This document shows positions 11,079-62,700 of a stretch of DNA of 64,000 nucleotides, piece after piece. The position numbers and the translations under genes were made by a program. Position 1 is the first letter of the stretch. Each line of letters starts with the position of its first letter. The notes under the pieces are model-generated. The model had not been told where the DNA came from and searched no databases. It saw only the letters and a program-made list of their open reading frames with translations. Origin of the DNA: Kudoa neothunni (Eukaryota > Animalia > Cnidaria); NCBI GenBank assembly GCA_964304625.1, contig OZ199840.1, forward strand, positions 2,778,787 through 2,842,786, in the 5' to 3' direction.

Positions 11079-14000
11079 ATGGTTAAGGATAAATTTTTGA
11101 ATTCCCTCTTATGTATATAGTTTTTTCTTACCATTAATGAATCTTTATTAGGCATGCAAATCGCATTCTTTTGCGTGGTAGAGAATGCAACAGCGCCCGC
11201 TTCAGCCTCAACGTCTACTCCCTTAGCTATTCTAAATTATCAAATTGAATATGATAGTGCTACTTCCTCTAATGTAGTTAAGCATACACTTGGCGGAACA
11301 AGTTATGCTACAGGAAAATGTCGTATATTGAGGTCAAACGAAGCAGAAACTATACTCAACTCAAGTACTCCAGCTGATCTTAAAGAAATTTCAGAATGCC
11401 CTGGACGTGAAACTGCCGAAACCACAAAATGCATAATCGATTGCAATAGCCAAACAAGTAAAGTACCGTATAATAAACTTTCTCCTAGAACAAAATACAT
11501 GTATGTATACGTTGGTGCAGATGAGGCTGTTAAAATAGAGCAATATCCAAGAGGTGGAAAGGTGTTTGGTTTGGCCATACGTAATCTAAATAACTTTGAA
11601 TTGATAAATAATTTAATCAAATTTAGCATTATTGGTCAATCCTCAAGTATCGATCTCTATGGCTGCAGAAAAATTGAAACTCCTAACAAAAACTTGCTCC
11701 CCAGTTGCGTGCCCAATCCATTATAAAGACGCACAATTCAAGGGGGGTAATGCGGGGCAAACATGTGACGCAGAAAACACAGAGAATGATGTTGAATTTG
11801 ATTTATTGATTCCTCATTATGAGATGAGATGTGTGAATTATCCAAGTTTCTTTTATTATATGCCAAATGCATACATGAAGAAAAATATCGCTATTTATGA
11901 ACCTCAGTATTACGTAACAAAAAAGGCGGGAGTTGCTAATCAAGTTGTTCTTAAATTCACTGATTTAATGTTATCATCAGAGATATGTGTTTTCAGTATT
12001 AAGGACGGTAAAACTGAAGTAGCTAACTCCGCGTATGAATCGAAATGTGGAAATACTGAGGGAAAGTGTTACGCACCTTGTAAAAATGTTGAGCTTACTG
12101 TAACAGCAGAAAAAGAAATATATAATGTTCTAATTCAAACCAGGAATCACGATCTTTCAAAAACATCTGTTGATTTTGATGGATTTTCTCAAAAAAAATT
12201 TCGTAATTTATTTTAGTCAATAATTATAATTATTTTATTATAAATCTTATAGCGATATCTGAGACTGGAGATGGTTTATTATCTGTTTATACGAAACAAG
12301 GTTTAACGTTGGATGGGGGATTTTTAAATCCATCATCGGGAACTAAGTTCAATACATGCACTCTAAAACATTATCCTGCTGACAAAGTCAATCCTACATC
12401 TTCAACTACTTCATGTAACGCGGCCACTAAAAAGGATAGTAGTAGTAGTGGTAGTGAGAGTGGTGAATGCAAAACTGGTTGCGAAAAATTAGTAATTGAA
12501 CAACTATCACCAGGGAAACCATATATAATTGAAATTGAGTCCAGTGGCATAGCAGATTTAACTTCCTTCAAAGAACAAATACTTATAAGAACAAGTAATA
12601 ATTTGAAATTAAAAATAAACAAAACTAATAATCATTAAAAGATAATGAGGAGAACAAAAATTTCCAAGAAACTGCCCCTACTAAAACAGAATCAACAACT
12701 ACACTAACAGCTATTGGAGGTGCAGCTGAAGGCAATATGAAAGATCAACCAAATTGTGAATACTATTTAAGTCCAACTGGGAAAAACACATTTTACACCG
12801 CTAAATGTACTGAAACCAATCCCTGTAGAGGAAGATGTAGAGAATCAATAACTATTGTTGATCTTGAACCAAACACTTCTTACGACGTTAGGGTCATTGC
12901 TGATAAGGAGTACAAAGAACACATATATACAAATGTTTTAACTAGTATATATATATATATTAACTTATTCAACTCAATCTAGATCTGGCAACCTTGAGAA
13001 TAACTCAAAAATACACTGAGCAAGGATTGGAATTGAATGCACAATTGTCCAAAAAAGTCCCAGAAGCCATTTGCCATTATACAATCCAAATAAAAAAAGA
13101 TGATGAGTTTGAAGATGTTTACGTCTGCGAAGCATCACAGACACCGGCAGCTGCACCAGAAACTCAAAATACTCCACCAAGCTCACCAGCCGAATCCAAT
13201 TCTAATACCGACCAACCACAAACTGGTACTAGTCAAATTCAAAGTCTAAAATCAGAAATTAATAAATTAAAAATTGCAAGAGCTGAATCTAATACTCCTA
13301 CTGAAACTGAAACTGATACAGATGTCACTCCAATTACGACAGTCGATACAACTGCGAGCCCGGTCAATTCAAACACATGCTCCTCGTTTCCATTGTGCAG
13401 TTCTATTAAATTCGACGACTATGATGCAAATGAAGAGTATAAAGTGTCTATTACTGCAGTGGGAAAATCAGAGAGAAATGAAATTACTTTAGTAGCTAGT
13501 AAAAATATTTTCGATATTATTATTATATTAATATTTAAAATAAATAGCCGCTCCAAAGGGGAATCCCACAGAAAACGACAAAATAATATATGTGACCATA
13601 ACAAGGGATGGTGAATCATTTGTTATAGAAAACACCCTACCATCTAGTCTTAATGAAAAATCCAAATGTAAATGGGAATTACGTAACGCGAGTACCAAAT
13701 CGATAGCAATTATTAAAAAATGCATGAGACGAAATGACAATGGATGTAGAACGTACCCTTCATGCAAATCATTCACTATCAGTGGATTAGCAGATGGCAA
13801 TAATTATCACTTGACTGTGTACAGTTCTATCAATCCAACAATTTATGGGACAGCCACTATTGAGCAAGGTAAAGCATTGTTACTTCGAAAATAATTAAAA
13901 CTGTAAATTTTAGGAGCCAAAAGCAGTTCCAGGTTTATTAATTAATATTTTTAAAATAAATAAATAAATTTTTAGTTCTAAAACCATGGTCATGTATTAA

Positions 14001-14114
14001 TTTATTGTGTTTTTACAATTTAACTGGTATTGTTTTAGAATAATTGCAGTAGCCGCTATTGGAGCTATGATCATGGGTGCTATTGGTTTCGTGGTTTTCA
14101 AGAAGAAAAAATAA
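11079..14114 (+). CDS. Family copy A: Cys-rich FN3-like repeat type-I membrane protein, ~877 aa, 10 exons
   Basis: Exons 11079-11112, 11152-11580, 11627-12202, 12253-12594, 12642-12944, 12983-13498, 13548-13868, 13914-13932, 13976-13993, 14039-14114 splice in frame with GT-AG introns. N-terminus MVKDKFLNSLLCMQIAFFCVVENA is signal-peptide-like; C-terminus MVIIIAVAAIGAMIMGAIGFVVFKKKK*. Confidence 0.9.
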
Positions 14115-14797
14115 ACGCCCTTATTTACGAATTATTGCCCTAAAATCCAACTATAGAAATTTAGATTATTTTTCTAATGGTGTGATATTTATGAAAATTT
14201 TTTAATTTGTCGACAATTAAAATTTATTGATACTTAATCAAATAAAAATATTTTATCTTTGATGTGTTCCAACGTTATTATAAAATTTGATTGGGATGAT
14301 ATGACTCGGATAAAAATGTGGGATTGTTAATAAATTTTAAAATTTTTTTATAATTATTTGAAATTGCTAAAACTTAATGAAATATAATAAACGAATAATA
14401 TTCATTTTGTTAAACGACTTAGTTAAATAAAATATATCTATCGAAAAATAGTTGTAAACGTTGATTAATCTTCCAAATATTTGGATGTTGTATTCGGTTA
14501 CTTTTATAAATTATACACTAAATAACGGTACTGAAATTTATGTGAAATATAAATATCTGAAAAACTAGATAACAAGATATGATTAATATTTTTTTTCTGT
14601 TTATTAAAAAAATGAGCTCAACGGCTTGTGTATTGGCATCTAGGATTTTCAACACTAATCAATGCAAACTCATTTCTTGGGAACTATAATTATGGTTTTA
14701 GTACTTATTCCAGTTTTTAATGAAATCTTGGGCTATTTAAAAGCTAATGTTATGTGGAAAATATTAATAAATAAATTAATTATTGGGTTACTTAACA

Positions 14798-15864: not shown

Positions 15865-18205
15865 CAGTATTTCAAAAAACTTGGATGCAACCATGTTGTA
15901 TTAAAATAGATAAATTATAATAAACGCATATAGGTAATAGTTTACTATTTCTTCCATATTTAGACATATTGGGTGGTATGACTTTGCGTGATTAGAATAA
16001 TATTGTAGTTGGACTGATGTTATTTCATTAGGTTCATTAAAGACGGCCTTCCATTTATTCCTCCATTTTTGTGGATGATTGATTTTTTGGTGAAAAATTC
16101 CACGATAAGATTAATCCTTTGGACCCCGAATTTAATTCAGCGACTGAAAAAATTTTGTTTGCTCATTCTGTTAAATTTTAAATAATTCTATATAAAATAT
16201 CCAAAAATTGGAGAAGTCATTTTAAAAATTAAAGATACACAAAAGGTGCCAAATGGTAACATTGGGACGCGGCTTATTTCAATATGCGGGAGTGCGACTG
16301 TGCTTGTTTTTATGTTACTTTGTTTTTAACCAAGAAGTTACTCTTCCACCATCAGAAATGAAATATTAAATTATTCGTTATATTTTTGATAGTCCAAAAA
16401 GCAGTTTCTGTTTTTATTGAGGTACAAAGAAATATTACACTTAATGCAAATATGTTCAAATAAGTGAAATATTCAAATATAATATCTTCAACTTATTCAG
16501 AAATATCAGCTGTTTCAATGCCATTGTTTATTTAATTTTTCGCGTTTATTGTCTAATTTAAGCGGTAGTCATCTTACTCCCCATCATTAGAACTGTATTC
16601 GGATACAATGCCATCATATTGACTACACAAAATGGAATCCGATTCCAGTCCAACGTCTGATTTGTTCCCATCTGGTAACAATATGATTCTTTAAAAGTAT
16701 GCTCTATTCTTTCTTCCCCACTGACCTATTCATTATCCATTCCAAAGAATATAAGCACATTTAAATCAAGGGTCGAACGTTGTCGTGTGACGACGTTCAC
16801 TGTACCCGCTGGCCCAATATTGCCGTGTGGCAACATTGATTAATCTGCCCCTATAGTATTCATACCAAAACATATTTTCATGTTAGATTAATATTTAGAA
16901 TAAACTTATTTAATACTATACTTATATATTTTTTAATTTTACTGAAACCTCAAAATTCCAAGTTCAATTACAGGATACTTTTAGCCTTTTTTTATACTTG
17001 CCGTAGAGTTAGATATTCATCTGTATTTCCCTTGATATAAAACATAAAAAGTTTTGTAATTCATTTATATAAAATCAAATAAACATTAACTATATTATTA
17101 TAATAAAGATAGATTTAAAAATGTAATTACATGGTTAAAACACTCACAAAAGTAAAATGTTTCCATTTGGCAACATAGGGGTTTAAAGGATTAAGGGATG
17201 GTTCATACGAAAGAAGAAACAAAAGTTTGTGGTCTTTTGAATCTAGTTTCCGTCGAATAAGGTCGGTTTTATTGAACCTTACACCGCTCGTAATTAATAG
17301 CTCACTTTGAATTATATAATCAGTAAAATCATTAAGAAGTTTCTCTATTAAAATCTCGAAAAATTGCTGTTTCACAATACCATTTGTCAGCTGAAACGTC
17401 TAAACTTTATCAGAGCAAACATAGGCAACCAATACGATGTTATTAGAGCGAACACTTTTTACTTTCATGTTCAAGTGCGAACCTGAAACCGACCTTCCAA
17501 ATAATGTTCGTCTCATATAAAGCGAGAAGCCAGACTCATCAATGTAAATTACAGGAAAATGGAGTGGTTTAGATTCCAGTTATTTTGGAACTTAATTAAT
17601 AAATATAACATATACCTTTAATTAATTAAAACAATTTTTGCGTTTCGATATGCAATCCTGAGAATTCCACGCAATTGGTACAATTGAAATATTGTTGAGG
17701 GCGTAATGGAACTGGCTCAAAGAGTTATCAATAATATGTCTAGAAACGCCGATATTATGTTCTTGTAGGTTTTTGGCGATTGAATCTAATGTGATTGTGC
17801 AATCTTCATTCACTAAGCTTTGGATATTGTGATTTGTGGACGGTTGTCAATCTTGATCTCCAGTCCCCAGCTCTTCTTAGAAATGCATTCTTCGTCGGCC
17901 GACTTCATCGTCATCCTCGAATTCTTTTAAAAAACCATGAGATCGTTGATTTGAAGACTCCAACCGTTTTTTTTTTCGATTTAAACATGAGTGCAATTTT
18001 CCTTGATATCCTTCAAAATAGTTTAACTAACGCCATACACTTTCGGTAACCTATGATAGTTTGTTTCGTTGTGTCTTCTAAAAAAATATACTTTCTTTTA
18101 GTGACATAAAGCTGTGATGAATTATGATCCGACATGGTTATTTGTAATAACGCGAACCAGTTTAATTTTGATCTGACGTTGTTGCATTTAGGTCTTGAAA
18201 TATTG
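15865..18205 (-). mobile_element. Decayed IS630/Tc1-family transposon, interrupted by a piggyBac derivative
   Basis: TA-flanked imperfect TIRs CAGTATTTCAAAAAACTTGGATGCAAC / GTTGCATTTAGGTCTTGAAATATTG; minus-strand remnants VNEDCTITLDSIA (HTH), PVIYIDESGF (first catalytic D) and LLSYEPSLN|LIVEFF (PYSPxLNPIE motif split by the insertion). Confidence 0.82.
16115..17190 (-). mobile_element. Non-autonomous piggyBac derivative inserted at TTAA inside the Tc1 transposase
   Basis: TTAA on both sides (16111-14, 17191-94), TIRs TCCTTTGGACCCC / GGGGTTTAAAGGA; the twin copy retains a piggyBac C-terminal Cys-rich remnant CIKCNVHFCLNKNRKCF. Confidence 0.8.
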
Positions 18206-18959: not shown

Positions 18960-21501
18960 CCTTAAAAGTAAACTGGGGTCCCTTTGGACCCAAACGAGAT
19001 TGCCACCTCGTTTTCTCAGTCGTTATATAATTACTAGAATTTAAACTCCTTCAATTCCCGTAAAACATGATTATCTGTAAAGGAATAGATTTATTGGAAT
19101 TTTCATCCGTCATAGCAATTTTTATAACAAAAACACCTTCGGAGTATAATTGGGATCCATTTGGACCACATTTTTTTTGATATTTTAAAAGCATATTATT
19201 TATATTAATTTTCAGATGGAAATTGGCATTAAAAATATTTTACATACCAAAATCTAATAAACAATTTTATGTCGCGCATACGTGAGTGTGCAAGTTTCTG
19301 TTGTGAGAGTATGGATTTCTTCTTAGGAAATAGCGAGGAGAGTATTGACACTAATGAATCTGAAACACAGGACCTAGTGGATTTGAAAGAGAGTGTCAGC
19401 AATGAGAAGAAAGAAAATCTTGTGCGTGATAAAAATAACGATTCGCTTGTAGACAAAAATAACTGTCTATGAAGTGTAATAAAATCAAAAAAACTAACGT
19501 GGCTGCAGAAAATAAAATGAATTTTCTTCGAGGTGTGACTGTGTACGCCACTCAAAAGATCTCTAGTATTGTATGATGTTTTCATCATTTCTTCCCAATA
19601 GAAATAGTGGAACAAACAATTAAGTATGCCAATCAATGTGGTAAGAATCATTATGGTAATAAATGGAGAGATGTTGAAGTCGATGAAATGCATGGTTTTA
19701 TTGGCTGTTTATTGTACGTGGCAATCCATAAGGATAGACAAGACGCTATTATTGACATGTTTAGTTGTGACGAAAGTAGGAAAATATACAAATATTTTTT
19801 TTCCTTGTACATATTCAGGCAATTAACAAGAGCATCCCACATTGATAATGCAGAATCTAGGAAGGAACGGCGGTAGCACGAACAATTTTGCCCAATTAGA
19901 GAAATATGGGACATTTGGGTCAACGTGGCGAAAAAATGTAATAACCCCGGAGAGAATGTACGTCTTGATGAGCAATTGGCTTATTTTAGCCGATTATAAA
20001 AAATAAGCTAGCAAATTATGGCTTAAAATTTTTCCTATTGGTTGATCCAGCATCTTCATATGTGTTAAATATTGATGCTTACGTCGACAAAAAATGTCTT
20101 TTAGATATGATATCAAAATTTATGATGTGGGGAAAAATTTTGCATTAAAATTAACTGAAAATTTGGTCAACTTAGGATGCAATTTGGTGTGTGATAATTA
20201 TTTTACTTCTATTCCTTTGGCTGAAAAGTTACTTAAAAGAACAATGACATTACTCGGTATCATCTGAATAAAAAAGCGAGATATTCCTCCATTTCTCCTC
20301 CCCGATAGAAAAACTCCTGTCAACGAATCGAAGTTTATTTTTAGAGACAAAAAATGTTAGTTTCGTTTTTGGAAAAAAACCAGTGTTACTTTTATCTATT
20401 TTGTACCCCAACACATCTATTTCTAGGGAATCCCCACATAAACCTGAGGTCATCTTAGAGTATAACGCTGCCAGAGGAGGCGTCGATACAGTTGACCGCA
20501 TGCTGGCCTCTGTCTCCGTCGGAAGATTTGCCAGACGATTGCCTTTGATTTTTTTTATAATATGGTCGGCATATCTCTGATAAATGCCTTTGTTGTTTAA
20601 AAAGAAATATTCAACGATCCTAGTATCAAACGGCGCAATTTCTTTAAAAAAGTAGCATATGAGCTATGCGAACCATTGAGATGCAAAAACAATCCAAATA
20701 TCCAACTAGCCACGAAGGAAGTAACCCTAAGCATGAAATCTCCAAAAAAGAATATCATTGATCGTAACCCTAAAAATTGATGTGTTTTATGTAGTCGAGA
20801 CAAAGATAAAAAAACATTTAAAATGCAAGCTCTGTGAGGTTCCATGCTGCAAACAACATGCAATATATGTTTGTACCAATTTCTTACCGTATTTTTCTCA
20901 AATATAATGAATTACTTATTCTTTCTATTTGATACTGATTCAAGTTATTTGCCATTTTTTATTGTACTGTCATGGAAATAATATGATTGTCCAAATTTAA
21001 AATTATTTGCAAACCATTTAATTTATTGGTTACGTGATTTTTAAATTGTCCTATTTTCATTTTGATAATGAAAGAAAAATTATATTTATAGGGATTTACT
21101 AATTATATTCGTTTGCAATCCATAGTAGATTTGATAGCTTTTCGCGTAGAGCTTAATTGAAATTCGTGATTCTATCATTAAAATAAATTTCAGCCCATTT
21201 TATTTATTTTTAATAATAATTTAAACAGATATATTATGTGTTTATGGAGTTATTAACGAATTCTAGTAACAGTCATTTTAAAATAATCAGTCGTAATATT
21301 TATGAAGGAACAATGCACGTAGACGCACGCGCCGGTGAAAACAAGACGTGAAATTATTAACGAAAAGAACACTTTTTAAAATTAAAATTTTACAGATTGA
21401 TAAAAAACTATATTATTCAATGAAATGATAAAATAAAATCTAGGGTCAAAATGAACCCCAATTATACTCCGAGGGGATCTGCCTAATTGTTACTTAGAAG
21501 G
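18960..21501 (+). mobile_element. Full-length but decayed piggyBac transposon (PGBD4-like transposase pseudogene)
   Basis: TTAA at 18956-59 and 21502-05; ends CCTTAAAAGTA / TACTTAGAAGG; internal IR pair at ~19136 and ~21445-21476; fragments WRDVEVDEMHGFIG, GENVRLDEQL, LVCDNYFTSIPLAEKL, KPEVILEYNAARGGVDTVD and a C-terminal Cys-rich region, broken by stops and frameshifts. Confidence 0.92.
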
Positions 21502-21505
21502 TTAA

Positions 21506-21780: not shown

Positions 21781-23752
21781 ATATGTAACCAAACTTTAGA
21801 ATATTATATAATTAATAAATTGTTTTTTTATTTCAAATTTTTTGCTTTATTTTTGCTGCAATATTAACTTTCACACACGGCTTGAATAGGATGCCGAATA
21901 ATAAATTTAACTTTTGATCGTACGTCCGGCGAGATTTCGCCAGACAAGAGTTATCTGCGTTTTAAGCTATGGTAGGTCATTTGAATACTAAATAAAGAAA
22001 TTGGAATTACTTTTCTACAACAGAAACTGCTAAAAATATACATACAGGGAAGGTTTGCATCCATCTTAACCTTGTTCCATGGAATGATTTTAATAGATAT
22101 ATAATTAATTTTCTGTCAATCTGTAAAAACTCTAATGTTAAATTTATAACCATTTTACAAAATATAATCATAATTAAAGATTAATAATTTTTTTCACAAC
22201 GGAGTAATTTACTAAAAACAAACACATTCAAAAAAAATATGTAAATTTTATTTGACATTTTTATATTTATTATACGCAGAAAAGTTAATTTAAAAATAAA
22301 TTTTTGTTCAATATTTAAATTAAGGTAAAAAAGGAAACCCTCATAAACGATAAGAAAAGTTTATATTAATGCCTACATTAGATGACGTGATGTTTAACAT
22401 AAGATATGGTGGTGCAAATTTTGAGTTTAAATATAAACTGATAAATATTCATATCTGAAAGTCAGAAAGAATTATCTCAATCAATTTTGGATCAATTGTA
22501 ATTTCAAATAAATCAACATGGTATTAGAATAGTAAATATAGTTTTGTATTGTCTAATTTTAGGGAATTTTAGAATGAGCGGCTTTTAACTCATTCAAAAA
22601 TTGGAATTTACTCTTAAAATGTATCATTTTATTATCAAGTGAAAATTTAAGTTCTTTAGCTTATAAAGTTAGCAATACATGAATTCTCAAATTTGAGAAT
22701 TAATTAATTTAGGAAATATCTTTAATAACTATAAAATTAGTTTAAGCTGCAAATGATGGTAAACTTTAAAAAAATAGTTTAAGTTAATGATTATAATATT
22801 TTTCAAATAAATAACCTAATTTACCAATGAATCAAATCTTGTTTTTTGATTTCTGTTTTAGGTCGGAAATAATTATATTAACTTTTAGGAAAGATCAATT
22901 AATTTACTTTGAAAAACATTTTGTTTTATTGGCTAAATATTATATTTAGCTCGAATTTTTTATATGAAGTCCAAAAATCTCTTGTTAAAATATCCGAATG
23001 ATGGAATATTTTAAGTTATTTTCTTGTATTAGATTTCACGAGTATTTTTGTGTAATCTCACTTATATAATTTTAAGTGAAATATCCAAAATTAAAATTTA
23101 AAGGATTGATTTTGTATTACATTTTGTAAGGTTAAGAAGAGTTTAATAAAGACACATTATTGTACGATGCTGATTTATGAATTTCGGTTATTTAACGTTA
23201 CGTAAATAACTTCATTTTTAACCAAAAAATCGTTTTTCTATTTTTTATGTTGAAAAGTTATTGTTATTATGTTAATTTATAAAATTTCTTAATAGGAATT
23301 ATCTTCGTATTATCACCAATATCTATTTGAGTGTGGTAGAGATAATAAAGATTGATTTCTAATATGTATAAAAAATGTAATAATACAAATATCTGATCTA
23401 TTTTGTAATGAAATTCAATAGAAAATTGATATAGATAAAAATGGCTTCAAATTCTAAAGAATCCATCATACGTCATCAGGTAAACCTTGGATTTCATGGT
23501 AATCTTAATAAAATGAAATCCACTCTTATGATTTTCATATTTTGTATCTCGTATTATTAAAATTTCTAAATTAATAATTAGGTTGTATTTTAATAATAAA
23601 AAAATATAAACTAATCAGAAAATTAAAATCAATGAAGAATTGGATTAATAAATCAATTGTCTTTTAGATAGGCTATTTACCCGATACGAGTATCGACTTA
23701 TTATAGTATTCATTTATTCAGTATTATTGGTTGTTTCGTTTTACCTTTCATT

Positions 23753-26700
23753 ATGGTTAAGTATAAATTTTTGAATTGCCTCTTATGTATATAGTGTTTT
23801 ATTACCGATAATGAGTCTTTATTAGTCATTCAAATCGCATTTCTTTGTACGATGGAAAATGCAACGGCGCCCTCTTCTCCATCAATGTCTACTCCATTAG
23901 CTACGCTGAATTATCAAATTGAATATGATAGTTCTACTACCTCCAATTTAGTTAAGCATACACTTGGTGGAACACATTATGCTACAGGAAAATGTCGTAT
24001 ATTGAAGTCAAACGAAGCAGCAAACATGGGTGGTTCGACAACAGCAGCGGCGTATCAAGAAATATCAAGCTGCCCTGGATATATTACCGATAGTAGTAAC
24101 ACAAACTGTGTAATTTCTTGTGACAGTCAGAATAACAAAGTTCCATATAATAAACTTTCACCACGGACAAAATATATATACGTATATGATAATAATGATT
24201 TCGACACTGCTAAAGCAGATTATCCTAAAGGTGGAAAAGTGTTTGGTTTGGCCACACGTAATCCAAGTATCTTTAAAGCAATAAATTATATCATAAAATT
24301 TAGCATTATTGGTCAATCCTCAAGTAACAATCTCTACCAATGCTGATAGATTGAAACTCCTAACAAAAACTTGCTCCCCAGTTGCGTGCCCAATCCATTA
24401 TAAAGACGCACAATTCAAGGGGGGTATTGCGGGGCAAACATGCGATACAGGAAGCACAGAGAATGATGTTGAATTTGACCTATTGATTCCTCATTATGAG
24501 ATGAGATGTGTGAATTATCCAAGTTTCTTTTATTATATGCCAAATGCATACATGAAGAAAAATATGGCTATTTATGAACCTCAGTATTACGTAACAAAAA
24601 AGGAGGGAGCTGCTAATCAAGTTATTCTTAAATTCACAGATTTAATGTTATCGTCAGAGATATGCGTTTTCAGTATTAAGGACGGTAAAACTGGTGCAGC
24701 TAACTCCGCGTATGAATCGAAATGTGGAAATACTGCGGGAAAGTGTTACGCACCTTGTAAAAATGTTGAGCTTACTGTAACAGCAGAAAAAGAAATATAT
24801 AATGTTCTAATTCAAACCAGGAATCACGATCTTTCAAAAACATCTGCTGATTTTGATGGATTTTCCCAAAATAAATTTCGTAATTTATTTTAGTCAATAA
24901 TTATAATTATTTTATTATAAATCTTATAGCGATATATGAGACTGGTGATGGTTTGTTGTCTGCTTATACCAAAAATGGTGTATCTTTTGATGGTACATTA
25001 TTAAACCCCTCTGCAAGTACAGGTACCAAGTTTTCTACGTGCACGTTAAAGCATTACCCTGCTGACAAAGTCAAACACACGCCTTCAACTACTTCATGTA
25101 ACGCGGCCACTAAAAAGAATAGTAGTAGTAGCAGTAGTAGTAGTAGTAGCAGCAGCAGTAGCAGTAGCAGCAGTAGCAGTAGCAGCAGTAGCAGTAGCAG
25201 CAGTAGCAGTAGTAGCAGTGGCAGCAGTAGCAGTAGTAGTAGTAGTAGTGAGGGTGGTGAATGCAAAACTGGTTGCGAAAAATTAGTAATTGAAGGACTA
25301 TCTCCAGGGAAACCATATATTATCGAAATTGAACCTAATGGAATCGCAGATCCAGCTTCTTTCAAAGAACAAATACTTATAAGGACAAGTAATAACTAAA
25401 AATTTAATATTAACTTAACTAATAATATTTACAAGATAATGAGGTGAATAAAAATTTTCAAGCAACCGCCCCTACTAAAACAGAATCAACAACTACACTA
25501 ACAGCTATTGGAGGCGAAGCAGAGACAAATAAAAATAATGAGCCAAACTGTGAATACTATTTAAGTCCAACTGGGAAAAACACATTTTACACCGCTAAAT
25601 GTACTGAAACCAATCCCTGCAGAGGGAGATGTAGAGAATCAATAACTATTGTTGATCTTGAACCAAACACTTCTTACGACGTTAGGGTCATTGCTGATAA
25701 GGAGTACAAAGAACACATATATACAAATGTTTTAACTAGTATATATATATATATATATATATATTAATTTATTCAACTCAATCTAGATCTGGCAACCTTG
25801 AGAATAACTCAAAAATACACTGAACAAGGATTGGAATTGAATGCACAATTGTCCAAAAAAGTCCCAGAAGCCATTTGCCATTATACAATCCAAATAAAAA
25901 CAGATGAAAGGTTTGAAGATGTTTACGTCTGCGAAGCATCACAGACACCAGCAGCTGCGCCAGAAACTCAAAATACTCCACCAAGCTCACCAGTCGACTC
26001 CAATTCTAATCCCGAGCAAGAACAAACTGGTACTAGTCAAATTCAAAGTCTAAAATCAGAAGTTAATGGATTAAAAATTGCAAGAGCTGAATCTAATACC
26101 CCTACTGAAACTGATACAAATGTTGCCCCAGCTACAACAGTCGATACAACTGCGAGCCCGGCCAATACAAATACATGCTCCTCATTTCCATTGTGCAGTT
26201 CTATTAAATTCAACGACTATGATGCAAATGAAGAGTATAAAGTGTCTATTACTGCAGTGGGAAAATCAGAGCGAAATGAAATTACTTTAGTAGCTAGTAA
26301 AAATATTTTCAATATTATTATTATATTTAAAATAAATAGCTGCTCCAAAGGGGAATCCAACAGAAAACGACAAAATAATATATGTGACCATAACAAGGGA
26401 TGGTGAATCATTTGTTATAGAAAACACCCTACCATCTAGTCTCAATGAAAAATCCAAATGTAAGTGGGAATTACGTAACGCGAGTACCAAATCGATAGCA
26501 ATTATTAAAAAATGCATGAGACGAAATGACAATGGATGTAGAACGTACCCTTCATGCAAATCATTCACTATCAGTGGATTAGCAGATGGCAACAATTATC
26601 ACTTGACTGTGTACAGTTCCACCGATAAAACAGTTTATGGGACGGCTACGATTGAGCAAGGTAAAGCATTATTACTTCGAAAATAATTTAAATTGTAACT

Positions 26701-26908
26701 TTTTAGGAGCCAAAAGCAGTTCAAGGTTTATTAATTAATATTTTTAACATAAATAAATTTTACATTTAGTTCTAAAACCATGGTCATGTATTAATTTATT
26801 GTGTTTTTACAATTTAACTGGTATTGTTTTAGAATAATTGCAGTAGCCGCTATTGGAGCTATGATCATGGGTGCTATTGGTTTCGTGGTTTTCAAGAAGA
26901 AAAAATAA
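23753..26908 (+). CDS. Family copy B, 10 exons, apparently intact, with poly-Ser expansion
   Basis: Same exon/intron structure as A; start MVKYKFLNCLLFIQIAFLCTMENA; ends GFVVFKKKK* at 26908. Confidence 0.9.
25121..25249 (+). repeat. (AGT/AGC)n coding microsatellite, ~43 codons of poly-Ser with one Gly
   Basis: Directly visible; copy A has only SSSSGS at the homologous site. Confidence 0.97.
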
Positions 26909-34162: not shown

Positions 34163-34256
34163 GTTTAGACTGTTTTCAATTTGTCAGCTTAGTTATTGTT
34201 TGTAAGTGTTTATTTGAGAGAGTCATTTTTTATAATTCAACCCATAAAAGTAAAAA

Positions 34257-45800: not shown

Positions 45801-45821
45801 CAAAAATTTATCCATAGTCAT
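42809..45821 (-). CDS. Family copy C; apparent 1-bp deletion frameshift in exon 6 (pseudogene or sequencing error)
   Basis: Same 10-exon layout; GCTGCCGTGTCTG at ~43765 versus GCTGCCGGTGTCTG in D and E splits the exon-6 ORF (43663..43917 / 43310..43759). Confidence 0.82.
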
Positions 45822-46168
45822 ACTAAAAGGTAAAATAAAACAACAAATAGTACTGAATAAATGAATACTATAATTAGCCGATACATGTATCGAATAAAAA
45901 ACCTATTGAAACGACGATATACTTAAAGTCTTAATTCTTATTTACTATTAAATTAATAATTATGAATTTAATATAGTTATTAAAATGCTGAAAATTGCAA
46001 ATTGAAACAATTATTTTATTATATAGCTCAAACAAATTCGATAATACTTATTATCTCTTGTTCAATCCGCCATAATAAAGGCAAAGAAAAAATTAATGGG
46101 TGGAACCAACTCTTACTGGATTAAATAATGAGTTAAATAATGTTAAACTTCATAAACGATATTTACAT

Positions 46169-50420: not shown

Positions 50421-50566
50421 AAATATTAAATCATATTTTTTGATTTGAACATTTAATAATTTGAATTATTGATAAATAAAAGCGTGGTTAAAAATATTGG
50501 AGCATAAATTAAATAATCGAAATTTCTCTAACTAGATAGTAGGGAAAAATTCGTATATATGAGCGT

Positions 50567-53500
50567 TTATTTTTTCTTCTTGAAAACCACGAATCCAATA
50601 GCACCCATGATCAAAGCTCCAATAGCCGCTACTGCAATGATTCTAAAACAATATCAGTTAAATTATAAAAAAACAATAAATTAATACATGACCATGGTTT
50701 TAGAACTAAATACAAAATTTATTTATGTTAAAAATATTAATTAATAAACCTTGAACTGCTTTTGGCTCCTAAAAGTTACAATTTAAATTATTTTCGAAGT
50801 AATAATGCTTTACCTTGCTCAATAGTGGCAGTCCCATAAATTGTTGGATTGATAGAACTGTACACAGTCAAGTGATAATTGTTGCCATCTGCTAATCCAC
50901 TGATAGTGAATGATTTGCATGAAGGATACGTTCTACACCCATTGTCATTTCGTCTCATGCATTTTTTAATAATTGCAATCGATTTTGTACTCGCGTTACG
51001 TAATTCCCACTTACATTTGGATTTTTCATTAAGACTAGATGGTAGGGTGTTTTCTATAACAAATGATTCACCATCCCTTGTTATGGTCACATATATTATT
51101 TTGTCGTTTTCTGTGGGATTCCCCTTTGGAGCAGCTATTTATTTTAAATATAATAATAATATCGAAAATATTTTTACTAGCTACTAAAGTAATTTCATTT
51201 CTCTCTGATTTTCCCACTGCAGTAATAGACACTTTATACTCTTCATTTGCATCATAGTCGTTGAATTTAATAGAACTGCACAATGGAAATGAGGAGCATG
51301 TGTTTGAATTGACCGGGCTCGCAGTTGTATCAACTGTTGTAGCTGGGGCAACATTTGTGTCAGTTTCTGTTTGAGTAATAGATTCAGCTCTTGCAATTTT
51401 TAATTCATTAATTTCTGATTTTAGACTTCGAACTTGACTAGTACCAGTTTGTGGTTGTTCGGGATTAGGACTGGATTCGGCTGGTGAGCTTGGTGGAGTA
51501 TTCTGAGTTTCTGGCACAGCTGCCGGTGTCTGTGATGCTTCGCAGACGTAAATATTTTCAAACCTTTCATCTTTTTTTATTTGGATAGTATAATGGCAAA
51601 TGGCTTCTGGGACTTTTTTGGACAATTGTGCATTTAATTCTAATCCTTGTTCAGTGTATTTTTGAGTTATTTTCAAGGTTGCCAGATCTAGATTGAGTCA
51701 ATAAGTTAACTTTTTGAGAAATATACTCGTCGTAACATTTTCATATATGTGTTCCTTGTAATCCTTATCAGAAATGACCTTAACGTCGTAAGAAGTATTT
51801 GGTTCAAGATCAACAATAGTTATTGATTCTCTACATCTTCCTCTACAGGGGTTAGTTTCAGTACATTTAGCGGTGTAAAATGTATTTTTCCCGGCTGGAC
51901 TTATATAATACTCACAGTTTGGTTCATCTTTCTTATCAGTTTCTGCCGTACCTCCAATAGCTGTTAGTATAGTTGTTGATTCAGTTTTAGTAGGGGCGGT
52001 TGCTTGAAAATTTTTGTCATCATTTTTCTCTTTGAAAATTATTAGTTATTGAGAGTTATTTTTCAGTTATTACCTGTCCTTATAAGTATTTGTTCTTTGA
52101 AAGAAGCTGGATCTGCGATTCCATTAGGTTCAATTTCGATAATATATGGTTTTCCCGGAGATAGTCCTCTAATTTCTACTTTCGTGCAATCATTTTTACA
52201 AACTTCAGGTTCATTCTCCCCGTTATTCTTCTTGCAATTCGTTTCATTGGAAGTAGTTGGCTTAATTGTATCAGCAGCATAATGCTTTATAGTACAAATA
52301 GTGCTAGATGTTCCTGACGTCGGTTTAAACAGGACAGTATCTAATTTTACACCCTCCTTTGTGAAATCGGACAATAAACCACCTCCAGTTTCAGATATAG
52401 CTAAAAATTTCTAATAAAATAATTTTTGGTTAAAATAAATTACGAAATTTATTTTGGGAAAATCCATCAAAATCAGCAGATGTTTTTGAAAGATCGTGAT
52501 TCCTGGTTTGAATTAGAATCTTATATATTTCTTTTTCTGTAGTTACAGCAAGCTCAACATTTTTACAAGGTGTATAACATTGTCCCGCAGTATTTCCACA
52601 CTTCGATTCGTACGCGGTGCTAGCTGCTGAATTTTTACCGTCCTTAATACTGAAAACGCAAATTTCAGATGATAATGATAAATCTGTGAACTTAAGGCGA
52701 ACTTGCTTATCGGATCCTGCCTTTTTTGTTACGTAATACTGAGGTTCATAAATAGCGATATTTTTCTTCATATATGCATTTGGCATATAATAAAAGAAAC
52801 TTGGATAATTCAAGCATCTCATCTCATAATGAGGGATAAATAAGCTAAAATCTACAATATTCGCATTGGAATTTGTCACACATGAATCTCCTTTTGAACC
52901 AACCGCGAATTTGGCGTCTTTGTAGAAAATAGGACAATCAACCTGTGAGCAAGTCTTATGTACGAACTTCAGTTTTTCAGCATTCGTAGAGATTATTACT
53001 TGAGGATTGACCAATAATGCTAAATAAAACGGATAAATTTATTCGATATTAATTATTTTTCTTACGTATTGCCAAACCGAACACTTTTCCACCTTTAGGA
53101 TAATCTGCTTTAGCAGTGTCGAAATCATTATTATCATATACGTATATATATTTTGTCCTTGGAGAGAGTTTATCATATGGAACTTTGCTATTCTGACTGT
53201 CACAAGAAATTACACAGTTTGTGTTACTACTATCAGTAATATATCCCGGGCAGCTTGATATTTCTTGATACGCCGCTGCTGTTGTCGAACCACCCATGTT
53301 TGCTGCTTCGTTTGACTTCAATATACGACATTTTCCTGTAGCATAATGTGTTCCACCAAGTGTATGCTTAACTAAATTGGAGGTAGTAGAACTATCATAT
53401 TCAATTTGATAATTCAGCGTAGCTAATGGAGTAGACATTGATGGAGAAGAGGGCGCCGTTGCATTTTCCATCGTACAAAGAAATGCGATTTGAATGACTA

Positions 53501-53570
53501 ATAAAGACTCATTATCGGTAATAAAACACTATATACATAAGAGGCAATTCAAAAATTTATACTTAACCAT
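50567..53570 (-). CDS. Family copy D, 10 exons, apparently intact
   Basis: ORFs 53049..53471, 52430..53014, 52063..52374, 51068..51676, 50788..51090 plus micro-exons and a terminal IIAVAAIGALIMGAIGFVVFKKKK*. Confidence 0.9.
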
Positions 53571-54485
53571 AATGAAAGATAAAGCAAATCAACAAATAGA
53601 ATTTAATAAATGAATACTCTAATAAGCCGATACTTGTATCGGGTAAATAGCCTATCTAAAAAACGATTGATATAATAATCTAATTCTTAATATATTGTAA
53701 TTTTCTGATTAATATATATTTACTTTGTTATTAAAATACAGCTTAATTATTAATTTAAAAATTTTAATAATACCAGATACAAAATATGAACATCATATGA
53801 GTGGATTTCATTGGATTAAGATTACCATGAAATCTAAGATTTAACTAGTGAAGTATGATGAATTATTTAGAATTTATAACTATTTTTCATCTTTATTAAT
53901 CTTCTCTTAAATTACATTACAGAATTGGGCAGATATTTGTAAAATTACATTTTTTCTACATATTATTAGAAATCAAACTTTATTTTCTCTACGACATTCT
54001 TTTATTAACCCTCCGGAGCACGCGTTGGGTCTTTTAGACCCCACGTGATTCTAATATTGCTATAACATTTTTTTAACTTAAAGCTAACGACTAGTAATTA
54101 ATCCTATTCGCATATTTTTTGACGAACATTACGTTGATTTAAAAGATCGAAGTGGCTGTATCTCAGGTACTTGATAATCCGGTCGGCCTCAGGCTATATC
54201 TCTAAAACTACTCAATATTGTTTTTCCATATTCCACATATCATCTAATGTTTATCTAACATAATTTTTTGTATATTTCTGAAAAATTAAAAAAAATTATT
54301 TTTTCCTTGTGTGACCATACACAGTCCAACAGCAGCTGGGTACGATTCTTTATTTTTTTAACATAATTTCATCAATTAACATCATTATACACAAAATGTA
54401 GAAATAATAATAAATTTCTGAGTTATCTATAACTTGGGTGCGCAATTTTTCTTTCTAATTAGCGTGGCACGGAATGAGTTCAAAT

Positions 54486-58783: not shown

Positions 58784-59018
58784 CAGTAGGTGACCACTCG
58801 TTTGTAATCTCCACGAGTATTGAAAAATGTACGAAAAATTGGTCATTAAGAAAAGCACGTAAAAATAGCAAATGTAAATTAAAATTCGTTTTATTAACTT
58901 GATACATTCCATTATAAAAAAATACGGTATATCTTTTTAAAAAAATTAATGCAGCATAAATCTACTTTTTGTTGAAAGTACAAACGAGTCGACAGTGCGA
59001 AAAACTGGTCACCCACTG
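58784..59018. mobile_element. Second copy of the ~234-bp TA-flanked MITE
   Basis: TA-CAGTAGGTGACCA ... TGGTCACCCACTG-TA. Confidence 0.82.
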
Positions 59019-59694
59019 TACTAAGTATTCCTATAATTAATAAAATTTTTTGGAATTTTTAATTCAATTTAGATTTTTAAATAGTCCAAAGTTTCGTTGG
59101 AAACTGGAATAAATGTTAAAACCACAATTATAGTTCCCAAGAAATGAGCTTGCATTGATTAGAATGCTGAAAATCTTAGATACCAATGTAAAAGCCATTA
59201 AGCTCATTTTTAATAAACATCAGATCATTCATCACATCTCGTTATCTAATTTTTATAATATTAATATTTCATATGAATTTCAGTATCGTTATTTAGTTTA
59301 TAATTTATAAAAGTAACTGAATACAACATCTAAATATTTAGGAGGTTAATCAATGTTTACAACTATTATTCGATAAATATATTCAATTTAATATAATTAA
59401 TTCGTTTAACAAAATAAATATTATGCGTATATCATATTTCATTATGTTTTAGCAATTTCTAATAATTATAAAAAAATTTTAAAAGTTTATTAACAATCAT
59501 ACATTTTTATCCGAGTCATATCATCCCTATCAAGTTTTATAATAACGTTGGAACACATCTAAGATAAAATATTTTTATTTTATTAAGTATCAATAAATTT
59601 TAATTATCGACAATTCATAAATATCACATCATTAGTTAAAAAATATAACTTTCTATAGTTAGATTTTAGGGTAATAATTCGTAAATAAGGGCGT

Positions 59695-62600
59695 TTATTT
59701 TTTCTTCTTGAAAACCACGAAACCAATAGCACCCATGATCATAGCTCCAATAGCGGCTACTGCAATTATTCTAAAACAATACCAGTTAAATTGTAAGAAC
59801 ACAATAAATTAATACATGACCATGGTTTTAGAACTAAATACAAAATTTATTTATGTTAAAAATATTAATTAATAAACCTTGAACTGCTTTTGGCTCCTAA
59901 AAGTTACAATTTAAATTATTTTCGAAGTAATAATGCTTTACCTTGCTCAATAGTGGCAGTCCCATAAATTGTTGGATTGATAGAACTGTACACAGTCAAG
60001 TGATAATTGTTGCCATCTGCTAATCCACTGATAGTGAATGATTTGCATGAAGGGTACGTTCTACACCCATTGTCATTTCGTCTCATGCATTTTTTAATAA
60101 TTGCTATCGATTTTGTACTCGCGTTACGTAATTCCCACTTACATTGGATTTTTCATTAAGACTAGATGGTAGGGTGTTTTCTATAACAAATGATTCACCA
60201 TCCCTTGTTATGGTCACATATATTATTTTGTCGTTTTCTGTGGGATTCCCCTTTGGAGCAGCTATTTATTTTAAATATAATAATAATATCGAAAATATTT
60301 TTACTAGCTACTAAAGTAATTTCATTTCGCTCTGATTTTCCCACTGCAATAATAGACACTTTATACTCTTCATTTGCATCATAGTCGTTGAATTTAATAG
60401 AACTGCACAATGGAAATGAGGAGCATGTGTTTGTATTGGCCGGGCTCGCAGTTGTATCGACTGTCGTAATTGGAGTGACATCTGTATCAGTTTCAGTTTG
60501 GGTATTAGATTCAGATCGTGCAATTTTTAATTCATTAATTTCTGATTTTAGACTTTTACTTTGAATAATGTCAGTTTGTTCTTGGTCGGGATTAGGACTG
60601 GATTCGGCTGGTGAGCTTGGTGGAGTATTTTGAGTTTCTGGCGCAGCTGCCGGTGTCTGTGATGCTTCGCAGACGTAAACATCTTCAAACCTTTCATCTT
60701 TTTTTATTTGGATTGTATAATGACAAATGGCTTCTGGGACTTTTTTGGACAATTGTGCATTTAATTCTAATCCTTGTTCAGTGTATTTTTGAGTTATTTT
60801 CAAGGTTGCCAGATCTAGATTGAGTTGAATAAGTTAATATTTTGATATATATACTCGTCGTAACATTTTCATATATGTGTTCCTTGTAATCCTTATCAGA
60901 AATGACCTTAACGTCGTAAGAAGTGTTTGGTTCAAGACCAACAATAGTTATTGATTCTCTACATCTTCCTCTACAGGGATTGGTTTCAGCACATTTAGCG
61001 GTGTAAAATGTATTCTTCCCAACTGGACTTACGTAGTATTCACAGTTTGGTTCTTCATTTTTATTTTCCTTTGCGTCGCCTCCAATAGCTGTGAGTGTAG
61101 TTGTTGATTCAGTTTTAGTAGGGGCGGTTGCTTGAAAATTTTTGTCATCATTTTTCTCTTTGAAAATTATTAGTTATTGAGAGTTATTTTTCAGTTATTA
61201 CCTGTCCTTATAAGTATTTGTTCGTTTAAAGTAGTTGGATTGCTGCCACCAGTTAATGCGATTTCAAGAATATAAGGTTTTCCTGCAGTTAATTCTTCAA
61301 TTACTAATTTTTCGCAGCTAGTTTTACAATTATTATTACTACTTCTGTAATTTGCGCCACATTGAGTGATAGATGGATCTTTTTTAATATTGTCAGCTGG
61401 GTAATGTTTTAAAGTGCAACCAGTAAACTGTGTGCCTGACCCTGGCTTAAAAACTGCTGCGTCAAAAGATACACCTTTATTGGTATAATCGGACAATAAA
61501 CCGTTTCCAGTCTCCAATATCGCTAATTATTAAATATATAATCGTATCAAATTTAATATGATACCAAATTTTTTTTGAGAAAATCCATCTAAATCACCAA
61601 TAGAAGTCTTTGAAAGGTCGTGATGTCTGGTTTGGATTAAGACGCTGTAAACATCTTTTGTTGCAGTCAGAGTAAGCTCAACATCTTTGCATGGTGCGTA
61701 ACATTTTCCATCCTGATTTCCACAGTTTGATTCGAATTGTTTGCTATTTCCTGCAGATGTACCATCTTTAATACCAAAAACACAGATCTCAGATGATAAC
61801 GTTAAATCTGTGAATTTAAGACCAACTTGATTAGGAGCTCCTGTCTTTTTAGTCACATAATACTGAGGCTCATAAATGGCCATGTTATCCTTCATATATG
61901 CATTTGGCATATTATAGAAAAAGCTTGGATAATTCCCACATCTTATTTCGTAATGAGGAACCAATAAGTCAAATTCAACGTCATTATTTGTGTTGTCCTC
62001 ATCACATGTTGTTCCTACGTTACCCCCCTTGAATTGTGCGTCTTTATAGTGAATAGGGCACACAACTGGAGGACAAGTTTTAGTCAAGAGTATTAGTTTT
62101 TTGCTCCCATCAACAGATATTTTTGCTTGTGGATTTACCAACAACGCTAAATTTAAAGATGATTTATCGAATAAAAATTATTTAAATTACGTATGGCCAA
62201 ACCAAATACTTTTCCGCCTTTGGGATATGTGCCCTCTTTGACAATGGTCTCATTAATATTATCATATACATATATGTATTTTGTTCGCGGGGTGAGTTTA
62301 TTATATGTTACTTTACTAGCTTGACTATTGCAATCTATCACGCATTTAGTGTTACTATTAGTACTATCGTACCCGGGACAGTTTTCGATTTCTTCTAAGC
62401 CAGCTGCTGACGTTGAACCGAAACTGTTTGCGGATGCGTTGGATATCAATATACGACACTTTTTTCCATCGCCATAACTTGATCCGTCAAGTATATGTTT
62501 CACTTTATTAGATTTGCTCTCATCATCGTACTCAATTTGGTATTTGAGTGTAGCTGTGGGAGTAGAAGTAGCTGTAGATTTAGGCACTGTTGCATTTTTA

Positions 62601-62700
62601 ATCATACAAAAGAATGCGATTTGCATGACTATAAAAATTCATGATTGATAATAAAAAAATAGATACATAAGAGGCAAAGCAAAAATTTATCTTTAACCAT
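59695..62700 (-). CDS. Family copy E; apparent 1-bp deletion frameshift in exon 7 (pseudogene or sequencing error)
   Basis: Same layout; start MVKDKFLLCLLFMQIAFFCMIKNA; TTACATTGGA at ~60144 versus TTACATTTGGA in C and D, and the 100-aa exon-7 ORF is missing from the track. Confidence 0.82.

Follow-up and report, generated by a model that had tools for sequence, protein, structure and literature searches.

A 64,000-nt stretch of the Kudoa neothunni genome (GCA_964304625.1, contig OZ199840.1, positions 2,778,787 to 2,842,786; hereafter the window) contains five related genes for Cys-rich membrane proteins, here called copies A to E, with divergent N-terminal and nearly identical C-terminal regions. 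Do these genes form a variant surface antigen system, with a variable tip on a constant base, as the original prediction proposed? We addressed this question by establishing the gene structures, the size of the family, the predicted fold of its modules, and the pattern of recombination and selection among its members.

Gene structure of the five paralogues

Self-BLASTN and a MAFFT alignment resolved five copies in the window, and projection of a single exon model onto each of them yielded 10 exons per copy (Table 1). All introns are GT-AG and 38-50 nt long, and exons 2-7 are all phase 1-1. Three copies have open reading frames, whereas C and E each carry a 1-bp deletion. Each copy encodes a signal-peptide-like N-terminus (MVKDK followed by 16 hydrophobic residues), six 4-Cys FN3-like modules, one orphan Cys-rich domain, a TM helix, and a KKKK stop. 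The signal peptide and the TM helix were judged from hydrophobicity only, and the sole 19-residue hydrophobic window lies at the C-terminus, directly before the KKKK stop. Two micro-exons of 19 and 18 nt are needed to keep the frame, and their splice sites and lengths are conserved in distant paralogues. The splice model rests on sequence alone, as three RNA runs (X10-X12) held no parasite reads and gave zero reads on the window, which is no test of expression. Contigs of sequencing run X1 show no indel at the frameshift of copy C, with depth over the site, and thus do not contradict it. However, X1 is probably the sample from which the assembly was derived, and this evidence is not independent.

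The observation behind the original prediction, namely five 10-exon paralogues with this layout and two frameshifted members, is therefore confirmed. Its variable loop peptides are present in exon 2. Exon 7 is 97-100% identical among the copies, and the TM exon is nearly so. Two details require correction. The S/T/P-rich segment is not a stalk but an insertion of about 75 aa in the Cys2-Cys3 loop of the exon-6 module, and copy B carries a poly-Ser expansion in the same loop of exon 4. Exon 3, listed among the strongly variable exons, is 75-91% identical among the copies.

Table 1. Positions of the five paralogues and their features within the 64,000-nt window.
Feature	Position	Strand	Description
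Copy A	11079-14114	+	Intact, 877 aa; exons 11079-11112, 11152-11580, 11627-12202, 12253-12594, 12642-12944, 12983-13498, 13548-13868, 13914-13932, 13976-13993, 14039-14114
Copy B	23753-26908	+	Intact, 915 aa; exon 2 D-like, exons 3-4 A-like
Poly-Ser expansion, copy B	25120-25249		130 nt, Cys2-Cys3 loop of exon 4
Copy C	42809-45821	-	Same layout; 1-bp deletion in exon 6 after base 43768, otherwise open
Copy D	50567-53570	-	Intact, 871 aa
Copy E	59695-62700	-	Same layout; 1-bp deletion in exon 7 after base 60146, inside an AAA run
Exon 2, copy A	11154-11579	+	Membrane-distal tip module; four invariant Cys, three hypervariable loops between conserved beta-strand motifs
Exon 3, copy A	11629-12201	+	First half an orphan Cys-rich, aromatic-rich domain; second half a 4-Cys FN3-like module; the most conserved part of the family
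Exon 7, copy A	13550-13867	+	Membrane-proximal 4-Cys FN3-like module
Micro-exons and TM exon, copy A	13914-14114	+	Two micro-exons (19 and 18 nt), then the TM exon ending in KKKK-stop
Palindrome, copy A	11008-11021		CGATAC-NN-GTATCG, 58-71 nt upstream of the ATG
Palindrome, copy B	23682-23695		Same element
Palindrome, copy C	45879-45892		Same element
Palindrome, copy D	53628-53641		Same element
Palindrome, copy E	62758-62771		Same element

Family size and genomic distribution

The family is far larger than the five copies first noticed. It comprises at least 150 members, and perhaps 300-400. An exon-7 query returned 315 candidates, of which 150, the maximum scored per query, gave hits all at E<=1.3e-19. 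For exon 2, the 150 scored hits of 257 candidates all reached E<=4e-10. An exon-3 profile gave 150 scored hits of 440 candidates, all at E<=2e-73, and 147 of these were free of stops. About one exon-7 hit in eight (about 13%) carries a stop, indicating that part of the family is decaying. The assembly spans 40.26 Mb in contigs of 17.15, 12.04, and 11.05 Mb plus an 18-kb piece (N50 12.0 Mb), with a TAAACC telomere at one end only. Hits lie on all three chromosomes, mostly in arrays, with 28 in the first 0.46 Mb of the chromosome contig here called C3. One array lies within 35 kb of a contig end, although the only assembled telomere is more than 1 Mb from the nearest member found. The compact genome is that of a metazoan, as supported by the presence of a nuclear-receptor zf-C4 domain, and the animal is a parasite. 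The published description of the genome (Weber et al. 2025, PMC12239612) does not mention the family, and the family appears to be undescribed.

The architecture is conserved beyond the window. All ten distant paralogues retrieved have the same module order, although exon 4 was undetected in two and the base module was doubled in one. A TM helix followed by a KKKRD, KKKN, KKKND, RKRN, or RKKLFYKEL tail was found in eight of them. The tail is therefore short and basic, but its sequence is not fixed across the family. Relatives outside this genome, located in AT-rich contigs from other samples, have the same exon 5-6-7 order.

Predicted fold of the modules

The exon-7 and exon-2 modules are predicted to adopt a seven-stranded beta-sandwich of FN3 topology. 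The AF2 model of exon 7 (pLDDT 88) returned mostly FN3 domains among its top Foldseek hits, including those of PTPRF, fibronectin, titin, and sDscam, at TM 0.5-0.63. The tip model of exon 2 (pLDDT 79) gave best VIA matches to FN3 and cytokine-receptor domains, namely those of IFNAR1, IL-20R, the prolactin receptor, and RIM-BP, at Z 5-6.7. These scores are moderate. At the sequence level, the exon-7 profile reached long canonical FN3-array proteins at E 1e-13 to 1e-7 with 5-13 matched stretches, for example, an Argonauta hians hypothetical protein made of FN3 repeats. In contrast, no module reached the Pfam fn3 (PF00041) gathering cut-off. Exon 5 scored best, at 19.3 bits against a cut-off of 25, and the other exons gave nothing. 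Exon 2 has no Pfam match, and exon 3, whose alignment contains 34 invariant columns, has no PDB, Pfam, or Atlas match. The statement in the original prediction that no homologue could be recognised is half right: no curated Pfam match or solved-structure sequence match was found for the exons tested, but the modules have an FN3-like fold and the exon-7 profile reaches canonical FN3 arrays. Homology between modules is weak, with hmmsearch E-values of 3e-4 to 0.3 in a small set and an hhalign E-value of 0.17 for tip against base.

Mosaicism, homogenisation, and selection

The five copies are segmental mosaics in which the nearest neighbour changes along the gene. Copies B and D pair in exons 1-2 (95-100% nucleotide identity), and A and B pair in exons 3-4 (91-99%). 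These are followed by B-C and D-E, then by C-D, and finally by a region in which all copies are 97-100% identical. The 3' half, introns included, has been homogenised by gene conversion (dS 0.02-0.15 against 0.4-1.4). In exons 6-7, dS is 0.015-0.16 and introns 6-9 are nearly identical, whereas in exons 2-4 dS is 0.43-1.45 and the introns are diverged. The contrast between tip and base mainly reflects divergence age rather than diversifying against purifying selection, and it holds only locally. Across the family, exon 7 is 40-70% identical to copy A and exon 2 is 30-58%, while exon 3, next to the tip, is as conserved as exon 7.

Selection along the gene had been set as a test of the original prediction, and no positive selection was found. 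Omega for the tip is 0.30-0.33, with 0.19 in the core, whereas the loops reach only 0.74-0.92 even though they were chosen for being variable. No partition and no 15-codon window in exons 2-4 exceeds a dN/dS of 1. At individual sites, 0 of about 140 are significant in the subfamily and 3 are marginal (uncorrected p about 0.05) in 42 sequences, none remaining significant after correction, although counting methods are weak at this divergence. Exon 7 has dN=0 among A, C, D, and E. With omega at 0.18-0.33, it is unlikely that the arrays are cargo of a mobile element without selection on the coding sequence.

Interpretation

The reading offered by the original prediction is partly supported. The most probable explanation, which we hold with moderate confidence, is that the five genes belong to a lineage-specific, massively expanded family of putative type-I membrane glycoproteins in a myxozoan parasite. 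In this view, each protein is a rod of FN3-like modules, each stapled by four cysteines (C1-x17-26-C2-x6-84-C3-x4-6-C4) and sitting on its own phase-1 exon, with the orphan domain of exon 3 in addition. The rod would be anchored by one TM helix with a tail of only 4-5 basic residues, so it could carry no signalling function of its own, and it may form part of the outer coat or adhesin layer at the interface with the host. The repertoire would diversify through tandem and segmental duplication, and through segmental gene conversion or unequal crossing-over that reshuffles module exons among neighbours while homogenising the 3' half. Near-neutral drift and length change in three loops of each module, including Ser/Thr/Pro-rich (probably O-glycosylated) insertions in the Cys2-Cys3 loop, would contribute further. 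Gene structure, family size, predicted fold class, mosaicism, and the selection pattern are established by the analysis, whereas surface location, glycosylation, and a host-facing role are inferences drawn from sequence without transcript, protein, or localisation evidence. The source paper reports that few host RNA reads mapped to the parasite (PMC12239612).

A true antigenic-variation system remains a hypothesis that we regard as possible but unlikely. Here, one or a few of several hundred genes would be expressed at a time, switching and mosaic formation by segmental gene conversion would allow evasion of fish antibodies, and frameshifted copies would serve as donor pseudogenes. The large repertoire in arrays, the mosaics, the pseudogene fraction (2 of 5 copies in the window), the hypervariable loops on a fixed Cys scaffold, and a subfamily-specific upstream palindrome agree with this scenario. 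Antigenic variation is also reported phenomenologically in some myxozoans (preprint 10.64898/2026.02.11.705288). On the other hand, no excess of non-synonymous change was detected and the assembled telomere is distant from any member found. Moreover, the fish stage of Kudoa lives inside muscle fibres, where pressure from antibodies is not obvious. In the most far-reaching and more doubtful form of this idea, the family would be the long-sought molecular basis of antigenic variation or immune evasion in histozoic myxozoans. An archive of 300-400 FN3-like coat genes would supply mosaic tips assembled by exon-scale gene conversion, and subfamily-specific palindromic promoter elements would allow one subset to be expressed at a time.

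Less likely still, the proteins may be parasite-internal adhesion or recognition molecules serving the cell-within-cell organisation of myxozoans, sporogenesis, or self/non-self recognition between plasmodia, by analogy with the Ig-like Alr genes of Hydractinia. Myxozoans are cnidarians, and the architecture matches in its tandem arrays, one domain per exon, a distal domain among the most variable, and a single TM helix. The strong conservation of exon 3 would suit a common binding partner. However, several hundred copies is far more than adhesion inside a few-celled organism seems to need, and the 4-5-residue tail has no signalling motifs, whereas Alr proteins have long tails. Retention in the ER or early secretory pathway is very unlikely: although KKKK, KKKRD, KKKND, and KKKN have Lys at -3 and -4 and fit the COPI di-lysine (KKxx) consensus (PMC3521961), the motif begins 0-1 residues after the TM helix against a minimum of five in endogenous COPI cargo (PMC3521961), RKRN and RKKLFYKEL do not fit, and hundreds of rapidly diverging ER residents with mucin-like loops would be without precedent.

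Comparison with known systems

Canonical FN3 ectodomain proteins, such as receptor tyrosine phosphatases (PTPRF/LAR), cytokine receptors, sDscam, and titin, share the predicted beta-sandwich, a Trp in the second strand, a Tyr-x-Leu-x-Val motif late in the domain, and one module per phase-1 exon. The present family differs in its four invariant cysteines per module, which ordinary FN3 domains lack, in long Cys2-Cys3 loop insertions, in the absence of a cytoplasmic domain, and in the orphan domain of exon 3.

The proposed analogy with Giardia and diplomonad VSPs, which extends to 18 VSP-like genes reported in Sphaerospora molnari (preprint 10.64898/2026.02.11.705288), holds for the signal peptide, the Cys-containing ectodomain, the single TM helix with a very short basic tail, the large repertoire, and the parasite host. 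It fails on composition. VSPs contain more than 5-10% Cys with many CXXC/CXC motifs, whereas copy A contains 30 Cys in 877 aa (3.4%), with 0 CXXC, 0 CXC, and 4 CXXXC. The modules are FN3-like rather than EGF/furin-like, and the tail is neither CRGKA nor the reported [KR]X[KR]XK[KR] as a fixed signature.

The closest functional model for the favoured explanation is provided by the Toxoplasma SRS (SAG1-related) and apicomplexan 6-Cys families. These comprise over a hundred genes in tandem arrays encoding disulfide-stapled beta-sandwich surface modules in a tissue-dwelling intracellular parasite, and they are used for attachment and immune modulation with stage-specific rather than clonally switched expression. 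SRS proteins, however, are GPI-anchored with one or two domains of a different fold, and no sequence or structural match to them was seen in our searches. The Hydractinia Alr complex is a cnidarian family of single-pass proteins with tandem Ig-like domains that sequence searches miss, one domain per exon, a variable distal domain, and tandem clustering. It has V-set/I-set-like domains, long cytoplasmic tails with signalling motifs, and tens rather than hundreds of genes.

Mosaic-forming antigen archives (Trypanosoma brucei VSG, Anaplasma msp2, Plasmodium var) likewise combine segmental gene conversion between paralogues, pseudogenes, and arrays. Those systems have defined expression sites and proven switching, neither of which is shown here, and the genes of this family have 9 introns and their own conserved upstream regions.

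A palindrome upstream of the closest relatives

Each of the five copies is preceded by the palindrome listed in Table 1, which is conserved despite a dS of about 1 in the adjacent exon. The pattern occurs at 16 sites in the genome against 1 for the control pattern. All of them lie on C3, nearly all upstream of the closest relatives of these genes, and the element is absent upstream of 10 distant paralogues.

Gene Structure and Coding Capacity

A self-comparison and a five-way alignment resolved five paralogous units, A and B on the plus strand and C, D and E on the minus strand. The five-copy arrangement described in the original prediction is therefore borne out. A single model of ten exons fits all five units, with every intron of the GT-AG type and 38-50 nt long, and with exons 2-7 all in phase 1-1. 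Copies A, B and D are open (877, 915 and 871 aa), whereas C lacks one base in exon 6 and E lacks one base in exon 7. A 22-nt intron within exon 2 was considered and rejected, because the real intron 2 is a 46-nt GT-AG interval conserved in position in all copies. The two micro-exons (19 and 18 nt) are required for the reading frame. In seven distant paralogues the first is conserved in sequence and the second in length and splice sites, while the introns around them are not conserved.

The N-terminus (MVKDK followed by a 16-residue hydrophobic stretch) looks like a signal peptide. The only strongly hydrophobic 19-mer lies at the C-terminus and is followed by KKKK-stop. The spliced coding sequence was built only to check frame, length and composition, and every database search and structure prediction reported here used single exons.

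The Kudoa neothunni Genome

The assembly comprises 40,260,978 bases in four pieces of 17.15, 12.04 and 11.05 Mb plus about 18 kb, and the GC content of the window is about 30%. Weber, Paulini and Blaxter 2025 (PMC12239612) describe a Kudoa neothunni genome of 40.2 Mb assembled from yellowfin-tuna HiFi reads at about 7x coverage, with three chromosomes plus a circular mitochondrial genome, an N50 of 12.0 Mb, a GC content of 30.4%, a median intron of 49 bp and a TAAACC telomere at one end. The present analysis likewise found (TAAACC)n at only one chromosome end. Annotation in that study relied on protein hints only, and 45.6% of the assembly was classed as repeats. The paper does not contain the word "surface" and describes no such family. 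Domain searches detected nuclear-receptor zf-C4 zinc fingers, whereas no Wnt, innexin or nematode cuticle-collagen N domain was found. A nematode origin and a free-living metazoan with a full developmental gene set were considered and rejected. The negatives are weak, since the control searches also returned nothing.

Predicted Modular Architecture

Cysteine positions and alignments reveal a repeated pattern, C1-x17-26-C2-x6-84-C3-x4-6-C4, in exon 2, in the second half of exon 3, and in exons 4, 5, 6 and 7. This gives six modules, each ending in an L-x-P/D-x-x-x-Y-x-hydrophobic strand motif. The exon-7 module was modeled with pLDDT 88, and most of its best Foldseek matches are FN3 domains (PTPRF, fibronectin, titin, sDscam and monobodies). 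The tip module (exon 2) was modeled with pLDDT 79. Foldseek returned nothing for it at E<=0.001, although VIA-align gave FN3 and cytokine-receptor domains at moderate Z of 5-6.7. Pfam searches of all exons yielded only a sub-threshold fn3 hit in exon 5 and chance hits such as Neuraminidase and Pur_ac_phosph_N. Similarity between modules is weak, and profile-profile comparisons of tip against base and of exon 3 against base were not significant, so a common origin is plausible but not proven.

The S/T/P-rich segment is an insertion of about 75 residues in the C2-C3 loop of the exon-6 module. Copy B carries a 130-nt (AGC/AGT)n expansion in the same loop of exon 4. The first half of exon 3 differs from the modules in its Cys pattern and has an aromatic-rich invariant core. 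Searches with exon 3 gave no PDB profile hit, no Pfam match, no Atlas lead (best 0.77), nothing in a word search of 5.8 billion proteins within the length window, and nothing in JGI metagenome contigs.

Family Size and Distribution

Genome-wide searches with three exons each returned 150 scored hits from a longer list of candidates, so these counts represent lower bounds. Each gene of the window gives one hit per query. The family therefore has at least 150 members and plausibly 250-440.

Genome searches with exon queries; scoring was limited to 150 hits per query
Query	Scored hits	Candidates	Weakest scored E
Exon 7	150	315	1.3e-19
Exon 2	150	257	4e-10
Exon 3 profile	150	440	2e-73

Of the 150 scored exon-3 hits, 147 have no stop, whereas about 13% of the exon-7 hits contain one. 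The scored exon-7 hits are distributed over the three chromosome contigs (29 on C1, 39 on C2 and 82 on C3), mostly in arrays, with 28 in the first 0.46 Mb of C3. All ten distant members retrieved have the same exon order, and TM helices with short basic tails (KKKRD, KKKND, KKKN, RKRN or RKKLFYKEL) were found in eight of them. One of the ten has a duplicated base module, and two lack a detectable exon 4.

Outside this genome, the exon-7 profile finds 25 proteins among 1.84 billion representatives. At least eleven of the short ones, from ENA and Logan assemblies, are clear homologs, and one contig of 24% GC carries exons 5, 6 and 7 in the same order. The longer hits are ordinary FN3 arrays. Hence, the family exists in related organisms but has no named or annotated member in the collections searched. 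Literature searches for a described myxozoan FN3 family found none.

Segmental Mosaicism and Homogenization

The original prediction described a variable tip on a constant base. Within the window this pattern is real, but its cause is mainly the age of divergence. In exons 2-4, dS is 0.43-1.45 (except in recently converted pairs) and dN/dS is 0.16-0.50, and introns 2-3 differ at 8-20 of about 46 sites, except in the recently converted A-B pair. In exons 6-7, by contrast, dS is 0.015-0.16, exon 7 has dN = 0 among A, C, D and E, and introns 6-9 are nearly identical.

Nearest neighbors switch along the gene. Copies B and D pair (95-100%) from the 5' flank through exon 2, and A and B pair (91-99%) through exons 3-4. 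The closest pairs are then B-C and D-E, followed by C-D, after which all copies are 97-100% identical, with A=B=E at the TM exon. The copies are thus segmental mosaics with a homogenized 3' half. Family-wide, mean identity to copy A is about 42% for exon 2, 55% for exon 3, 46% for exon 4, 53% for exon 5, 38% for exon 6 and 54% for exon 7. The base is not constant at this scale, and the module next to the tip is as conserved as the base.

Selection

No 15-codon window in exons 2-4 exceeds a pN/pS of 1, with loops giving 0.5-0.9 and strand cores 0.1-0.2. Only the mucin-like insert of exon 6 exceeds that value, on few changes. Maximum-likelihood codon models of exon 2 gave an overall omega of 0.33 in 17 close paralogs (core 0.19, loops 0.92) and of 0.30 in 42 paralogs (core 0.18, loops 0.74). 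The loops were chosen because they vary, which biases their omega upward. A parsimony count identified no site with a significant non-synonymous excess in the subfamily and three marginal ones (uncorrected p about 0.05) in the large set, against 24 and 54 sites under purifying selection, respectively. The genes are therefore under selection to stay coding, with near-neutral loops. Although saturation and recombination limit these tests, diversifying selection is not shown.

Upstream Elements and Sequencing Evidence

All five copies carry the palindrome CGATAC-NN-GTATCG 58-71 nt upstream of the ATG. The genome has 16 exact sites against one for the control pattern, all on C3 and nearly all beside the closest relatives of these genes. 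Ten distant members lack the element upstream, which rules it out as a family-wide promoter. It represents a subfamily-specific candidate binding site for a dimeric factor.

The sequencing runs identified carry the label of what is probably the host. Contigs of run X1 cover copy C without indels, which does not contradict its frameshift, although X1 is probably the assembly's own sample. Three metatranscriptomic runs (X10-X12) gave zero reads on the stretch, which does not amount to a test of expression.

Interpretation and Relevance

The best-supported reading is a lineage-specific, very large family of type-I membrane glycoproteins. In this view, each protein is a rod of disulfide-stapled FN3-like modules with mucin-like loop insertions and no cytoplasmic domain. 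The family would be diversified by duplication, exon-scale conversion and loop drift, and it most likely forms part of the parasite surface facing the host. The gene structure, family size, mosaicism and selection pattern emerge from the analysis itself, as does the fold class at the level of structure prediction, whereas glycosylation, surface location and the host-facing role are inferred.

The interpretation offered in the original prediction is only partly supported. Antigenic variation in the strict sense is possible and would fit reports of antigenic change in other myxozoans, but it is unsupported by the selection tests and stays a hypothesis with regard to expression. The VSP-like genes reported in Sphaerospora molnari (preprint) are a different kind of protein, with CXXC-rich ectodomains. 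The KKxx-like tail raises the possibility of ER retrieval, which is considered unlikely because the motif starts at the membrane, whereas known COPI cargo has at least five spacer residues (PMC3521961).

Myxozoans are economically important fish parasites whose host-interface molecules are almost unknown, and Kudoa species spoil tuna, salmon and flounder flesh. If the counts hold, this family would amount to some 3-8% of the 5,316 genes predicted for this genome. It seems to have escaped annotation, possibly because gene models were built from protein hints and nearly half of the assembly was classed as repeats, a reason that is itself inferred. The family provides concrete candidates for the parasite coat, for diagnostics and vaccines, and for testing whether animals can evolve protozoan-style variant-antigen archives. 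It is also a clean example of exon-per-module shuffling and concerted evolution in an extremely reduced animal genome, and it contains an orphan, highly conserved Cys-rich domain in exon 3.

Genomic Features

Coordinates of features within the window and at other loci of the assembly (C1, C2 and C3, chromosome contigs; L063, L064, L065 and L067, other loci examined)
Feature	Location	Strand	Observation
Formin gene	window 1210-2881	+	FH2 domain at E 3e-41; upstream part contains 96-nt tandem repeats (1594-2022)
XPD/ERCC2-type helicase gene	window 6750-9406	+	Multi-exon; DEAD_2, HBB and Helicase_C_2 domains spread over four ORF pieces
Intron 2 of copy A	window 11581-11626	+	46-nt GT-AG interval
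Repeated fragments	window 16105-17161		Recur at about 30.6-31.1 kb and 56.6-57.6 kb
Decayed piggyBac-type transposase	window 19229-20600		DDE_Tnp_1_7, E 2e-6; between copies A and B
Exon of a gamma-tubulin complex component	window 36804-37160	-	GCP C-terminal domain, E 6e-12; between the plus-strand pair and the minus-strand trio of family genes
1-bp deletion in copy C	after window base 43768	-	Exon 6
1-bp deletion in copy E	after window base 60146	-	Exon 7
Segmental duplicate of the A-B gene pair	C3:34695-50400		2.75 Mb away near the contig start; same 12.65-kb spacing and same palindromes; the A-like copy there has a stop in exon 2
Telomere array	C2:12039536-12040069		Only (TAAACC)n telomere array in the assembly, at the end of C2; nearest family members found about 1.1 Mb away
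Family member L063	C1:13257600-13262400	-	Two tandem exon-7-like base modules and a longer tail (RKKLFYKEL); shows that module number varies within the family
Cluster of about ten exon-7 hits	C2:7.95-8.15 Mb		Most with a single in-frame TGA inside the match; could be a pseudogene subfamily, an extra intron or a shared lesion spread by conversion
GTATTCAT-like motif	window 11030-11045 and upstream regions in L064, L065 and L067		Recurs just upstream of the start codon in close and some distant members; possible core promoter element of the family
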